64,000 bases of DNA from Hyaloraphidium curvatum SAG 235-1 (Eukaryota > Fungi > Monoblepharomycota). Every line of letters starts with the position of its first letter. The first letter of the stretch is position 1. Made by a program: the position numbers and the translations under genes. Shown piece after piece: positions 56,492-61,619 of this stretch. The stretch lies in NCBI GenBank assembly GCA_025558095.1, contig JAIVFI010000012.1:248001-312000 (forward strand), given 5' to 3'. Below the pieces are notes generated by a model. It was not told where the DNA came from and did not search any database. It saw only the letters and a program-made list of their open reading frames with translations.

Positions 56492-57587
56492 ATGCCCGCC
56501 ACCCGCCGGATCCGCCTCCTCCTCGCCGCCGCGGCGCTTGCGCTCCTCGCCGCGCGGCCCGCATCGTGGGCGCCGCGCCGCCGCCGCCGCGCGGGCACCG
56601 CTGACGCTCAGGCACCGCAGGTCGGCCCCCGCGGGCGCCGCAGGCCAGCTCCAGACAGCCGCGGCCTCGTCGCAGCTCGCCGACAAGGGCGAGAACGTGG
56701 TGTTCCGGAGGTCGTGTGCCGGCTGCCCCGAGGACTCGTACTGTGGGTTCCCGCCTTGCGCGCCCCGCCCCTGGCGCCGCTCAGCCGCGTCGGGCGGCGG
56801 CTCCGCGCGAGGCAAATAGCTGACCTGCGATCCTCGATTGGCTTTTCCTCCCTTGCGACCCGCGCGCCGACGTGCCGCCCTCGGATCCCCCCTCCCATCG
56901 TCGACAGGCGAATATGGCTACGCAGGCAGCGAAGGCGGCGTTGCTTGCGTGTCCTACCAGCTCAAGAACCACCTGTACCGCCGCTACGCGCCCCCAGACG
57001 AGGGTCCGAACTGCCAGAGAAACATCCTTGTCGGACCCGGTATCAATCCGTGCTCGAACGGGGGCACCTGCGTCAACGCCACGGGGACCGGGTTGGGCTT
57101 CACCTGCTCCTGCGCCACGGATTACACAGGGGGCCGTGCGTACCTGACAGCCGCCCCTCCGCCCCGGGAAGCTCAACCAGCCGTGCCATCGCCCCGCAGT
57201 GTGCCAGTCGACGATCAACTACTGCCTGCTCGCCACGTGCAAGAACGGCGCCACGTGCACCGTGCTCATCACCCGCCCCTTCTACTCCTGGTGGGCCTGA
57301 CCTGTACTATACGCCGGAAATACCTCTGACCTGCCCACCGCAGCCAATGCCAGCCTGCCTTCCGGGGCACCAACTGCGAGGAGCAATACTTTGTCCCCCC
57401 TTCCGGGGGAACCGGCAACTATGGCGACGCCGAGGTCTGCGCGAGGTACTTTGTCGTCTCGGCGACCGGAACCTTCGTCCAGAGGGCGTGCACCAAGTTC
57501 GGATCGACTCAATACGTCTACGACACCGTATCGCGGCGGTGCGTGGCTCCATCGATCAATACGGTGACGATGCAGGGATGCAGGTGA
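56492..57587 (+). CDS. Secreted protein with two EGF-like repeats and a C-terminal CBM14/peritrophin-like Cys module, about 5 exons
   Basis: Signal peptide; introns 56566-56620, 56743-56907, 57136-57199 and 57291-57343. EGF1 C..NPCSNGGTC..FTCSCATDYTGGLC; EGF2 NYCLLATCKNGATC..YSCQCQPAFRGTNC. Confidence 0.82.
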
Positions 57588-57789
57588 TCGCACGCGGAGG
57601 AGCGGGGTGTCACTCGGGGGAAACCACGATTCTGGGCCATCATTTCCCCATGCTTTGTCATTGCAGCCTTTGGGAAACACATTGTTGCGCCCCGGCGGGC
57701 CGGGAAAGGCGTGTATGTGCTGCGCGGCAATACACGGGTGTACCATTATGGCTAGCACGTCCGTCGGATGCGGATCGCCAGCGGAAGCA

Positions 57790-59169
57790 TCACAGCTCGC
57801 CGTGTGCGCCGCCATCCAAGCCCGGGAACACCGGATGCCCCAACACGTGGTCCACCGCGTCCCCCAGCAGCCCCAGGAACGCTTTCTCGGAGACCGCGTA
57901 GTTCCAGTACTTTTCCTCCCCCAGCCTCGCCTCGTCCGGCCCGGGCTCCTTCCGCACGATGTTCCCCGGGCCCCCCGCGGCGTACCCCAGCCCCAGCAGC
58001 CGGCTCAGGTCGCGGAAGCACCGGTCCCCGGCGTCGTACAGCTCGACGACGGCGGCCCAGGGGGGCAGGAACAGCGCGTGGGCGAGGCCGGCGCCGTGGA
58101 TGCCCGCGAGCACGTCGGCGGTGCTGGTCAGGCGGACCTGGTCCTCGAACGGCACGCGCTCGCCGAAACCGAAGCGGGCGACGAGCAGTTCCGCGCGGGG
58201 GAAGCGGCGGCGGGCGGCGGCGGCCAGGTCGGCCTCGTTGAGGAGGCGTCGCGTGGGGCCGGAGCGGGAGAGGAGCACGATCTTCAGTTTTGCGCGGGGA
58301 CGGCGGCGTTCGGCTGCGATGCGGTTGCCGAACAGCGCCGCAAGCTGGGCGCGCGAGTACGCCGGCAGGAAGCTGCCCGGGCCCGCGCGGCACCCGGACG
58401 GCACGGGCTGGTTGTAGAAAAAGGTGAACAGCGAGCGCGGCTTGACGGCAAAGACCACACGGTCGAAGCACAGCGTCCGGTTCGCGTGCTCGGAGAGGTG
58501 GATGAGCGGTTCGGTCGTGAAGAGCGCGTGCAGCGCGTCGAACGGCGAGCCCACGTAGAAGGCGTTCGGCTCGTGGTAGAGGACACGCATGGCGTCGGGG
58601 GGCTCGTCCTGCAGGCCGACGGCCCACAGCGACAGGTACAGGTTCGGGAAATCGCACAGCTTGTGGTACACGCTGGCCGGCGAGTCGCCGTGCGTGGCCA
58701 TCACGGTCTTTGAGAACAATGTGTCGCACTTTGGAGGCGGCGTGAGGCGGAACCTGCCGAGCTCCCCGACCCAGTTGCCCAGCTCGAACGGCGACCGCGT
58801 CGGCGGTGGGTAGTCCGGGTCCAGGTTGCACGCCCCGCGGGCGCCGACCGTCCCATCGCCCGAGATCCACACGTGGCGGGCGTCGCAGAGCGTCATGTCG
58901 GCGTTGCAGCGGAGCGATGTGCGGCCCTCGCGGAGGTCCCCTCTGCAGTACTCGCGTACGGCGCCCGCACGGGCCGCGGCGCCCCAGTCGCAGATGTTCC
59001 ACCACCGAGCGCCACTCGCGGGGTCGGAGCAGCGCGCGCCGGCGGCCTCCATGCCGGGCTCGGGGCCGACAAGCGGCGCGGCTGCCTCCGCCGGCAGCGC
59101 CCCCGCCGGCAGTGCCCCCGCCAGCACTGCGGCGCCCGCCAACGCCGCGGCCGCAAGGACCCGCAGCAT
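57790..59169 (-). CDS. EOGT: EGF-domain-specific O-GlcNAc transferase (GT61), EOGT-like
   Basis: Signal peptide; YHKLCDFPNLY, LCFDRVVFAVKPR, FYNQPVPSGC, GIHGAGLAHALFLPPWAAVVELY..DRCFRDLSRLLG, KYWNY, DHVLGHP; C-terminal HGEL (HDEL-like). Confidence 0.85.
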   Translation of the reverse strand: MLRVLAAAALAGAAVLAGALPAGALPAEAAAPLVGPEPGMEAAGARCSDPASGARWWNICDWGAAARAGAVREYCRGDLREGRTSLRCNADMTLCDARHVWISGDGTVGARGACNLDPDYPPPTRSPFELGNWVGELGRFRLTPPPKCDTLFSKTVMATHGDSPASVYHKLCDFPNLYLSLWAVGLQDEPPDAMRVLYHEPNAFYVGSPFDALHALFTTEPLIHLSEHANRTLCFDRVVFAVKPRSLFTFFYNQPVPSGCRAGPGSFLPAYSRAQLAALFGNRIAAERRRPRAKLKIVLLSRSGPTRRLLNEADLAAAARRRFPRAELLVARFGFGERVPFEDQVRLTSTADVLAGIHGAGLAHALFLPPWAAVVELYDAGDRCFRDLSRLLGLGYAAGGPGNIVRKEPGPDEARLGEEKYWNYAVSEKAFLGLLGDAVDHVLGHPVFPGLDGGAHGEL

Positions 59170-59309
59170 CGCGTCCGAACTAGCTTCAAGGGTTCCGACG
59201 ATGACATGCAGGGCTCGAAGGGCCAACCACGCTGCACGGACGCGCGATCGACGTGAGTGATCGACGAGGGCGTCCCATTATTTGCTTGTGCTAGCGGGGC
59301 GGGGCCTCC

Positions 59310-61619
59310 ATGGCGCGGCCCGAGGCGTCGTCGCAGCTGCTGCTTGCGCTGCTGCTGCTGTCCGTGCTGGGGATTCTGGCCGGCGGCCTCCGCGGCGAGC
59401 CGTCGCGGCGCGTGCTCCTTCCCCTCGGCGAGCGCGGGCCGCGGTTCCGCCGTGCCGACGCGTTTCTGAACAAACTGCGCGACGACGTTGCGGCGGCGGG
59501 GGACGCGGACGACGACGGCGGCGATGGCGAAGGGGGGCCGCCCGTGGCCGCGTCGCTGGCGCCCGACGGCTCGGTGGTGCTGCGCGTCGGCGCCGGCCTG
59601 CCGCACCCGCTGTCGGCGGACGCCATTTCGCGCGCCCTGGACGCCGCCAAGGGGGAGATTGCGCGTCTGCTCGCGGGGAAGCCGGGGAACGTGGTGGTGC
59701 GGACAGAGACCAACTTTGCGTCCCAGATGGAGCTCGGCACGCCCACGCTGGAGACCGTGACCGAAGAGTGCCTGGTGTGGGTCAACGGTACGGGCATGGA
59801 AAGTGCGGAATATGTGGCCCAGGACGGCGCAGAGGGGGTGGAACCGGAAGACGGGTCCGGCTTTTGCGCGGTCTACGCGGCCCTGCGAGGTGAGGACGAG
59901 GAGGACGGCCTGCTCTACATTGGCGATTTCGAGGACGGCGCGTCCATGGAGTACGCGCCGCTGCCGGTCGCCGATCCGCCGCTGAGCATCAAGCCGGACC
60001 TGCCGTTCGGCTCGCCCTCGTGGCTGGAGCACTTCCGCGCCAAAATCCGCGAGATGTTCTTCCACGCCTTTGGCGCCTACCTGCAGCACGCCTACCCCAA
60101 GGACGAGCTGCGCCCGCTCTCGTGCGCGGGCGAGGACAACTTTGGCGGCACCCAGGCCACGCTGATCGACTCGCTCGACACCCTCGCGGTGCTCGGCGAG
60201 TGGGACCTGCTGCGCTCGTGCCTCTCGCTCGCCCGCTCGGCGAGCTTCGACGGCGACGCCGACGTCTCGGTCTTCGAAACCAACATCCGCATCCTGGGCG
60301 GCCTCCTCTCGGCGCACCTGGCCGCGCAGCGCGGCGTTCCGGGCTACTCTGGCCACCTGCTTTCCCAAGCTCACGACCTCGGCCGCCGCCTGCTCCGCGC
60401 CTTCGCCTCCAGCAGCACCGGCATGCCCTACGGCACCGTCAACCTGCGCACGGGGATCAAGCGCGGCGAGACCGAGAGCACCTGCACCGCGTGCGTGGGC
60501 ACCTACGCGCTCGAGTTTTCCTGGCTGAGCCTGCTCACGGGGGACGCCTCGTTCGAGCGGGCCTCGCGCCGCGCGGTGCGCGCGCTGGCGAGGTCGGCCA
60601 CGCCGCTGGGGCTGTACGGGGGCCACGTCAACATCACCTCGGGCGAGTGGATCCACGCCGAGGCGTCCGTGGGCGCGGATTCGGACTCGTTCTACGAGTA
60701 CCTCTTCAAGGCGCACTTTGCATTCGCGGACGAGGCCGAGTACGGTCCCATCGCCGCCGCCGCGCTGGAAGGCATCCGGACGCACCTCAAGAAGGGCGTC
60801 TGGCACTTTGACGTGCACGCCTCCAACGGGCAGACCGTCTTTCCCTGGCACCACTCGCTCGCCGCCTTCTTCCCCGGGCTCAAGGTCCTCCGCGGGGACC
60901 TCCTCGAGGCGCAGGACGAGCTCTGGTCCAGCCGCATGATCATGGACCGCTGCGGCGGCTTCCTACCCGAGCAGTTCGACCTCCGCTCCGCCTCCCCGGT
61001 CGCGGGGAGGTCGCACTACCCCCTGCGCCCCGAGTTCGCCGAGAGCGCGTGGGCGCTGCACCGCGCCACGCGCGACCCGTGGCTGCTGGACTGGGCCGCG
61101 CGGTTCGCGGCGGACCTGGACACGCGGACTAGGGTGGGCTGCGGGTTCGCGGGGCTCGCGGACGTCGGCACGGGGGAGCTGGCGGACAGGATGGACAGCT
61201 TCCTGCTCAGCGAGACGCTCAAGTACCTCTACCTGGTCTTCGACGCGGGGAACGAGTACAACGGCCCGCCCAACGGGCGCGACTGGGTGTTCACGACCGA
61301 GGCGCACCCGCTGCCCGTGACGGACAGGCGGGGCTGGCGCGGCGGGCGGTGGGTCGGGGTGGACCGGCGCAGGCGCAAAAGGCGCGCGGGCCCGGAATCC
61401 CCGCCGCCGCCGCCCGCGCCGCCGTTCAGCGACCCGGGCACGCGCACGTTCGAGAGCCCGGCCATGGTCTCGGCGATCCACGCCGAGTCGGTGGGGGCGT
61501 ACAGGGAGCGCAGCCGCGCCGCGTGGGAGGCGGGGGTGTGTTTGTACGACGAGTGGGTGGAGGCGACGCACGGAAGGATATGGGGGCGGACGGTGGGGGG
61601 AATGAGGATCAGGGGGTGA
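59310..61619 (+). CDS. GH47 EDEM/Htm1-type alpha-1,2-mannosidase-like protein
   Basis: EMFFHAFGAYLQHAYPKDELRPLSC, SVFETNIRILGGLLSAH, DSFYEYL, YPLRPEFAES, MDSFLLSETLKYLYL, FTTEAHP. Confidence 0.93.
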   Translation: MARPEASSQLLLALLLLSVLGILAGGLRGEPSRRVLLPLGERGPRFRRADAFLNKLRDDVAAAGDADDDGGDGEGGPPVAASLAPDGSVVLRVGAGLPHPLSADAISRALDAAKGEIARLLAGKPGNVVVRTETNFASQMELGTPTLETVTEECLVWVNGTGMESAEYVAQDGAEGVEPEDGSGFCAVYAALRGEDEEDGLLYIGDFEDGASMEYAPLPVADPPLSIKPDLPFGSPSWLEHFRAKIREMFFHAFGAYLQHAYPKDELRPLSCAGEDNFGGTQATLIDSLDTLAVLGEWDLLRSCLSLARSASFDGDADVSVFETNIRILGGLLSAHLAAQRGVPGYSGHLLSQAHDLGRRLLRAFASSSTGMPYGTVNLRTGIKRGETESTCTACVGTYALEFSWLSLLTGDASFERASRRAVRALARSATPLGLYGGHVNITSGEWIHAEASVGADSDSFYEYLFKAHFAFADEAEYGPIAAAALEGIRTHLKKGVWHFDVHASNGQTVFPWHHSLAAFFPGLKVLRGDLLEAQDELWSSRMIMDRCGGFLPEQFDLRSASPVAGRSHYPLRPEFAESAWALHRATRDPWLLDWAARFAADLDTRTRVGCGFAGLADVGTGELADRMDSFLLSETLKYLYLVFDAGNEYNGPPNGRDWVFTTEAHPLPVTDRRGWRGGRWVGVDRRRRKRRAGPESPPPPPAPPFSDPGTRTFESPAMVSAIHAESVGAYRERSRAAWEAGVCLYDEWVEATHGRIWGRTVGGMRIRG

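Follow-up and report, generated by a model that had tools for sequence, protein, structure and literature searches.

The analyzed window, a 64,000-bp stretch of the genome of the fungus Hyaloraphidium curvatum SAG 235-1 (Monoblepharomycota; C12:248001–312000, in a contig of 786,496 bp), contains two convergent genes. The minus-strand gene encodes a family GT61 glycosyltransferase related to EOGT, and the plus-strand gene encodes a secreted protein with two EGF repeats. A preliminary description had read this pair as an animal-type EOGT next to a candidate substrate and, hence, as an extracellular O-GlcNAc system outside animals. Our analysis confirmed the underlying observation and partly supported its interpretation: we regard the enzyme family as real and pre-animal, while the specific enzyme–substrate pairing is only an unproven candidate. 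The assembly searched comprised 31.9 Mb in 55 contigs; GenBank entries for H. curvatum proteins matched open reading frames elsewhere in it exactly, one of these frames being on the same contig as the window.

The GT61 gene and its family

The intronless open reading frame of the minus strand matched the Glyco_transf_61 family of Pfam (PF04577). Its best match among solved structures was mouse EOGT (PDB 9wjk, E 1.1e-47), aligned over query residues 55–449, whereas POMGNT2 chains matched at about 3e-10 and over the C-terminal half only (residues 205–379), a gap of 37 orders of magnitude. The similarity to characterized EOGT was full-length and well above that to other GT61 enzymes; a plant-type or POMGNT2-type identity was ruled out by these values. 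The EOGT motifs and the HGEL tail listed in the preliminary description were all recovered, the motifs being visible in the alignment with 9wjk. An AlphaFold2 model of the protein (pLDDT, predicted local distance difference test, 84.4) had the GT61 fold as in POMGNT2; the best Foldseek match was also POMGNT2 (E 5e-19), the only protein returned from a PDB library older than 9wjk. The genome has 23 GT61 matches, of which the EOGT-like one stood alone, the other GT61 genes scoring at most 30 bits against it. This GT61 expansion, with several members grouped on contig C2 (303–332 kb and 441–487 kb), is unrelated to the EOGT-like gene. Contamination was ruled out: the contig is 786 kb long, its GC content matches, spliced genes adjoin, and named H. 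curvatum proteins are carried by the same contig.

Transcription was assessed with contigs of one public run (X1), which we take as RNA because they skip GT..AG introns; the run carries no strand information, and expression levels cannot be ranked from the depth of its contigs. Unspliced contigs covered the GT61 gene at 57790–58114 and 58119–59029. The stored gene model (P0001, 368 aa) begins at Met92, so that the leader is missing and the EOGT N-terminal domain is incomplete (58894–59169); the reading of 459 aa is better, since both the RNA coverage to 59029 and the homology from residue 55 extend upstream. In the longer protein, a hydrophobic leader at the N-terminus and the C-terminal HGEL were read directly. 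Relatives end in KEEL, RDEL, or HDEL, and eukaryotic members of the non-animal clade described below end in KEEL, RDEL, or SEL; together with HGEL, these tails are hints of a location in the endoplasmic reticulum (ER).

Searched exhaustively with HMMER, 1.84 billion representatives yielded 36 matches at E up to 1e-30; those with names were EOGTs of animals (bird, leech, jellyfish, crustaceans, nematode) plus a single Chromera velia protein. In an IQ-TREE phylogeny of 41 sequences, two sister clades were formed, one with all the named animal EOGTs (support 99/99) and a non-animal one (99/97), consisting of the fungal protein, the protein P0002, the Chromera protein, three further eukaryote-like proteins from metagenomes or transcriptomes, and a group from Acidobacteriota. 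The closest relative of the fungal protein was P0002 (36% identity, support 100/99, tail KEEL). Forcing this pair to the animals cost 25 log-likelihood units and was rejected by the approximately unbiased test (p-AU 0.022, for a grouping defined once the tree was known). Thus, the fungal protein lies outside the clade of characterized, animal EOGTs; the earlier label "animal-type EOGT" holds for the family, as opposed to plant or POMGNT2 GT61, and fails for the animal affiliation. The Acidobacteriota proteins were nested among eukaryotic sequences, which suggests that the bacterial genes were acquired from a eukaryote.

The EGF gene and its transcripts

The plus-strand gene was read in five exons (Table 1). 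Contigs of run X1 skip 56743–56907, 57136–57199, and 57291–57343, all bounded by GT..AG, and give exactly the junctions predicted in the preliminary description; spliced EGF1 reads C-A-T-D-Y-T-G-G-L-C from C5 to C6, and EGF2 reads C-Q-P-A-F-R-G-T-N-C. The C4 codon of EGF2 is split over the junction of exons 4 and 5 (57289–57290 + 57344). Each exon of the spliced protein was searched separately. Exon 3 alone passed the Pfam EGF model (PF00008; 26.5 bits, cut-off 21.5), and the six-Cys pattern of EGF1 was completed by the RNA-confirmed splice, which brings in C6; EGF2, divided between two exons, was read by eye only. Passing from exon 1 into the frame of exon 2 requires an intron of 46 nt (56566–56611) or 55 nt; that frame has no ATG upstream of its own, and in the paralogues the leader and the Cys motif share one frame. 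Run X1 has no contig over 56517–56664, so exon 1 and the short intron were deduced from the nucleotide sequence. We failed to find a Pfam CBM_14 (PF01607) match for the C-terminal Cys-rich module; sub-threshold matches in two paralogues (16.8 and 17.7 bits, cut-off 22.1) were obtained, and the module is possibly of a peritrophin-A/CBM14-like fold.

The two stop codons (57585–57587 and 57790–57792) are 202 bp apart in tail-to-tail order, as had been described. A single contig, contig 3, comprised the EGF gene, the whole spacer, and 325 bases of the GT61 3' end; because it bridges both genes, their transcripts overlap or abut at the 3' ends, overlapping and abutting untranslated regions being indistinguishable in an unstranded library. 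An Illumina adapter remnant precedes this contig at 56665. Both genes are transcribed, as follows from the coverage of the EGF gene by spliced and of the GT61 gene by unspliced contigs. On its other side, the GT61 gene stands head-to-head with an EDEM1-like gene; the two, both assigned to ER glycoprotein processing, may share a promoter.

Table 1. Positions of the genes and features considered; unprefixed numbers refer to the window, prefixed ones to other H. curvatum contigs or to separate loci.
Feature	Position	Strand	Basis or remark
EOGT-like GT61 coding sequence	57790..59169	-	459 aa, intronless; open from first ATG
EGF gene, putative exon 1 (ATG 56492, signal-peptide-like leader)	56492..56565	+	sequence only
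EGF gene, exon 2 (R-R-S-C-x-x-C...Y-C motif common to paralogues)	56612..56742	+	3' end by RNA joint 56742/56908; 5' end predicted
EGF gene, exon 3 (EGF1 from C1, 57012-57014, to D-Y-T-G-G; Thr ACA 57126-57128)	56908..57135	+	RNA joints, Pfam EGF
EGF gene, exon 4 (EGF1 C6, 57202-57204; EGF2 C1-C3 from 57223)	57200..57290	+	RNA joints 57135/57200, 57290/57344
EGF gene, exon 5 (EGF2 C5-C6 to 57377; Cys-rich module 57378-57584; stop TGA 57585-57587)	57344..57587	+	RNA contig
Convergent intergenic spacer, 202 bp	57588..57789	.	spanned whole by RNA contig 3 (56665-58114)
Head-to-head spacer, 140 bp	59170..59309
GH47 EDEM-like ER alpha-mannosidase-like gene	59310..61619	+	PF01532 E 5e-105; best PDB EDEM1 8zpw E 6e-67
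Paralogue of the EGF gene	G000:C46:109283-109796		layout comparison, exon 5 match
Paralogue of the EGF gene	G000:C15:738717-739223		layout comparison, exon 5 match
Paralogue of the EGF gene	G000:C40:417065-417601		layout comparison, exon 5 match
Paralogue of the EGF gene	G000:C31:82650-83121		layout comparison, exon 5 match
POFUT1 homologue	G000:C44:144921-145877 (L018:1456-2649)	-	full-length; PDB 5ux6 E 7e-60
POGLUT1-like GT90	G000:C21:436941-437945 (L022:1345-2604)	+	PDB 5l0r E 4e-26
EGF/EOGT-like cluster	L001:8001-16391	same strand
EGF/EOGT-like cluster	L037:9013-15721	same strand
EGF/EOGT-like cluster	L038:10001-16763	same strand
EGF/EOGT-like cluster	L039:6360-11277	same strand
EGF/EOGT-like cluster	L034:9896-15934	same strand
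Further EGF/EOGT-like clusters	L031, L033, L036, L040	same strand

Acceptor sites, partner enzymes, and gene linkage

The refined consensus of mammalian EOGT is C5-x-x-G/S/P-Y/F/T-T/S-G-x-x-C6 (bioRxiv 10.1101/2021.11.02.463467). At least five EGF domains of H. curvatum fit C5-x-x-[GSP]-[YFT]-[TS]-G-x-x-C6, so that enzyme and acceptor sites co-occur in the genome; sites in genes outside the paralogue family included C-P-S-S-F-T-G-T-N-C, C-A-S-G-F-S-G-P-Y-C, and C-M-P-G-Y-S-G-I-L-C. The O-fucose sequon C2-x-N-G-G-T-C3 was present in nearly all the EGF domains. A full-length POFUT1 homologue and a POGLUT1-like protein, the latter among 13 GT90 matches, were also encoded (Table 1). Taken together, these homologues and sites mean that the fungus has all three enzyme types along with EGF domains carrying all three sequons.

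The EGF gene in the window is one of five paralogues, each encoding a leader, the R-R-S-C-x-x-C motif, two EGF repeats, and, at the C-terminus, a Cys-rich module. All three Notch-type sequons (C-x-S-x-P-C, C-x-N-G-G-T-C, and [PS]-F-T-G) are present in EGF1 of the copies on C46 and C40, whereas the C15 and C31 copies have no Ser or Thr at the acceptor site. The last exon match of the C40 copy contains one in-frame TAA. In the copy next to the EOGT-like gene, EGF1 has the O-fucose sequon as C2-S-N-G-G-T-C3, and the pattern C2-x-x-x-x-T-C3 is present in both repeats.

Linkage of EOGT-like and EGF genes was also found in bacteria. Species-representative genomes were scanned, yielding ten loci of Acidobacteriota (Thermoanaerobaculia and Holophagales, on contigs of up to 8.4 Mb); a metagenome contig of 111 kb added an eleventh. 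In nine of these eleven loci, the EOGT-like gene has a gene for an EGF-repeat protein no more than a few kb away and on the same strand; in the other two, the contigs end 2.1 kb and 0.3 kb past the EOGT-like gene. The motif C5-x-x-[GSP]-[YFW]-[ST]-G-x-x-C6 was present in 23 of the 24 EGF domains of the bacterial loci, most of which also carry the O-glucose sequon C1-x-S-x-P-C2; they have calcium-binding motifs of the Asp/Asn-hydroxylation type. All five loci scanned with Pfam (L001, L034, L037, L038, and L039) encoded a fused GT8/GT90 protein (xylosyltransferase-like and POGLUT-like), three of them (L001, L034, and L037) a major facilitator superfamily (MFS) transporter, and L001 an additional GT90. 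This clustering with motif-bearing EGF proteins ties the non-animal clade to EGF substrates; of the indirect support, it is the strongest part. Signal-peptide-like leaders were found on the bacterial EGF protein and GT61 (checked in L001 and P0003); the MFS protein of the cluster is a candidate supplier of the UDP-sugar donor outside the cytoplasm. A literature search for EOGT together with Acidobacteria or Acidobacteriota EGF clusters found nothing relevant.

Several points weigh against the protein in the window as a substrate. Its EGF1 retains Y-T-G but has Asp at the G/S/P position and so does not fit the refined consensus, while EGF2 has Arg in place of the acceptor; the consensus sites of the C46 and C40 paralogues lie away from the EOGT-like gene. 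Conserved linkage, which the preliminary description had proposed to look for by synteny, was not borne out in eukaryotes: no EGF-like open reading frame was found on the contigs of three eukaryote-like relatives (10, 6.4, and 3.4 kb), which is thin data. In addition, the adjacency was noted post hoc. One Pfam model detected at least 13 EGF loci in the genome. The chance that any given gene has one of them 1.5 kb away or less is then about 0.2%, but since 13 is a lower bound, about 1% is more realistic; a chance neighbor at roughly 0.2–1% is not very rare.

The same observations bear on the view of a functional EGF O-glycosyltransferase that stands beside this gene by coincidence, its clients being consensus EGF domains encoded elsewhere and the neighboring EGF1 remaining unmodified. 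The Asp of EGF1, the better sites of other paralogues and genes, the number of EGF genes, and the relatives without an EGF neighbor agree with this view, as does the general rule that enzyme–substrate pairing is not the usual gene organization in eukaryotes. On the other hand, Y-T-G is kept at the acceptor position, the prior for a chance neighbor is only about 0.2–1%, and, as the clade's bacterial members show, linkage between the enzyme and an EGF protein is selectable. We consider coincidence a serious but minority possibility. The pairing itself is plausible, resting only on adjacency and a near-consensus site, and actual modification of Thr 57126–57128 is doubtful. A complex prediction of GT61 residues 41–459 with an intact single-exon EGF domain (L008:1169-1294:-) scored 0.00, which is not evidence either way.

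Catalytic residues, proposed function, and comparison with known systems

In the crystal structure of mouse EOGT, UDP is contacted by N245, H248, R372, R377, Q412, and H432, and the substitutions N245D/Q, R372K/L, and Q412E/N abolish activity (PMC13123520, 2026). Residue mapping gave S166, H169, R302, R307, Q344, and H364 as the equivalents in the fungal protein, five of the six being kept. The equivalents of C135, W207, and R377, linked to Adams–Oliver disease, were also retained. Ser166, which replaces Asn245 of the N-R-R constellation, was confirmed in RNA by contig 4, which showed no differences. Among the 13 members of the non-animal clade, the fungal protein alone has Ser at this position, all others having Asn; Ser is also found in 3 of the 62 other sequences of the family, all representatives of the animal clade and including EOGT of Hyalella azteca, so the replacement may be tolerated.

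Three features of the protein speak against a function like that of animal EOGT: the Ser166 replacement, given that N245D and N245Q kill the mouse enzyme; the absence of the invariant metazoan N-glycan site N263; and the tail HGEL, which is a non-canonical retrieval signal. One explanation would be diverged specificity, either for a different donor sugar or for an acceptor other than EGF (a secreted glycoprotein or wall polymer, for instance), comparable to POMGNT2 and plant GT61. The altered N-R-R triad, the position outside the characterized clade at 28–30% identity to animal enzymes, and the large GT61 expansion in the genome are in line with it, as are the distinct activities that a review ascribes to related protist and plant sequences (PMC8724618). 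Nevertheless, the match to EOGT extends over the whole length, including the N-terminal domain, unlike the matches to other GT61s; the equivalents of Gln412 and His432, EOGT-specific uridine contacts absent from POMGNT2, are conserved; and in the bacteria, synteny with EGF proteins that bear the motif speaks for a clade directed at EGF. Diverged specificity is unlikely. Still less probable is an enzyme impaired by the Asn-to-Ser change in the UDP-phosphate triad, retained as an ER factor that binds EGF without enzymatic activity, or encoded by a decaying gene: the mouse mutants and the uniqueness of the fungal Ser in its clade would fit, but the reading frame is intact and transcribed, all other site residues are kept, the three animal-clade sequences with Ser suggest tolerance, and the Ser hydroxyl could still form a hydrogen bond to phosphate.

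We therefore favor, with moderate confidence, an EGF-directed ER glycosyltransferase of the EOGT family as the product of the minus-strand gene. The sequence assigned the protein to its family and the tree gave its position, both genes were seen to be transcribed and the EGF gene to be spliced, and EGF domains with sequons were found along with the partner enzymes; the donor sugar, the EGF acceptor, residence in the ER, and modification of the neighbor itself are inferred. The proposed enzyme would be a lumenal ER protein of GT-B fold that binds a UDP-sugar, probably UDP-GlcNAc, most likely via Arg302, Arg307, Gln344, and His364, with His169 beside the acceptor. As folded EGF domains travel through the ER, it would attach the sugar to the Ser or Thr that stands before Gly in their Cys5–Cys6 interval. 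The POFUT1 and POGLUT1 homologues would be its partners and the secreted and receptor-type EGF proteins of H. curvatum its clients, among which the tail-to-tail neighbor, one of the five EGF-EGF-(CBM14-like) paralogues, is a candidate with its site at Thr 57126–57128.

As to the wider proposal of an O-GlcNAc system outside animals, a true fungus with a transcribed EOGT-family gene, POFUT1 and POGLUT1 homologues, and sequons speaks for it; the part that relied on the neighbor is weakened by a site off the refined consensus in one of five paralogues. The sequon-bearing EGF domains and the two homologues make a non-animal EGF O-glycosylation system a reasonable inference, reinforced by the conserved EOGT-like/EGF clusters of Acidobacteriota; on comparative grounds, an EOGT-family system outside animals has a good basis.

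In the current literature, EOGT counts as an enzyme of metazoans whose evolution went hand in hand with the expansion of EGF in early animals. It has been traced only to sponges and cnidarians (PMC13123520, 2026), and in the literature searched we found no paper linking EOGT to fungi, chytrids, or Hyaloraphidium EGF. Transcription of an EOGT-family gene in a true fungus, a member of the Monoblepharomycota, would place the beginnings of the EGF O-glycan code and of extracellular O-GlcNAc before animals. EGF O-glycosylation by EOGT, POFUT1, and POGLUT could, somewhat short of an even chance in our estimate, be an older eukaryotic secretory system that survived in a chytrid-grade fungus and some protists and was captured by Acidobacteriota as a cluster with EGF substrates, GT90, and GT8. 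If so, the bacterial clusters and the fungal pair would be genetically linked enzyme–substrate sets for studying acceptor recognition by EOGT, and they would provide simple Notch-free systems to ask what EGF glycans do in folding or secretion. For the N-R-R rule proposed for active GT61 enzymes, this natural replacement of Asn245 by Ser is relevant.

Compared with animal EOGT (mouse 9wjk, Drosophila Eogt, human EOGT/AER61), the fungal protein is likewise a GT61 enzyme of GT-B type with an extra N-terminal domain, aligning at residues 55–449. It shares the equivalents of His248, Arg372, Arg377, Gln412, and His432 and of the three disease-linked residues, a spacing of four residues between the two Arg, and an xxEL-like tail, in a genome that holds EGF domains with the acceptor motif. 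It differs in its identity of 28–30%, its separate sister clade, Ser for Asn245, the lack of N263, HGEL instead of a KDEL-like signal, and its host, a fungus without Notch. POMGNT2 and plant GT61 (XAT/XAX, beta-1,2-XylT) have the GT61 fold, the two Arg, and the His in common with the fungal protein; unlike it, they lack Gln412, His432, and the N-terminal domain, and similarity (E 3e-10) is confined to the C-terminal half.

Within the non-animal clade, Chromera velia A0A0G4F0D5 (named EOGT automatically in UniRef) and the eukaryotic P0002, P0016, P0029, and P0074 are the relatives of the fungal protein. Unlike it, the other members carry Asn at the Asn245 position and a six-residue insert, G-T-G-x-T-S, between the two Arg. 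The Acidobacteriota systems differ in their same-strand, operon-like clusters, EGF domains of calcium-binding type, perfect motifs, and lack of an ER signal, in contrast to the fungal pair of two separate convergent genes, one spliced and one unspliced, with EGF of the non-calcium-binding type. They nevertheless belong to the same clade as the fungal gene at 37–39% identity, and in both the enzyme gene is linked to a secreted EGF-repeat protein.

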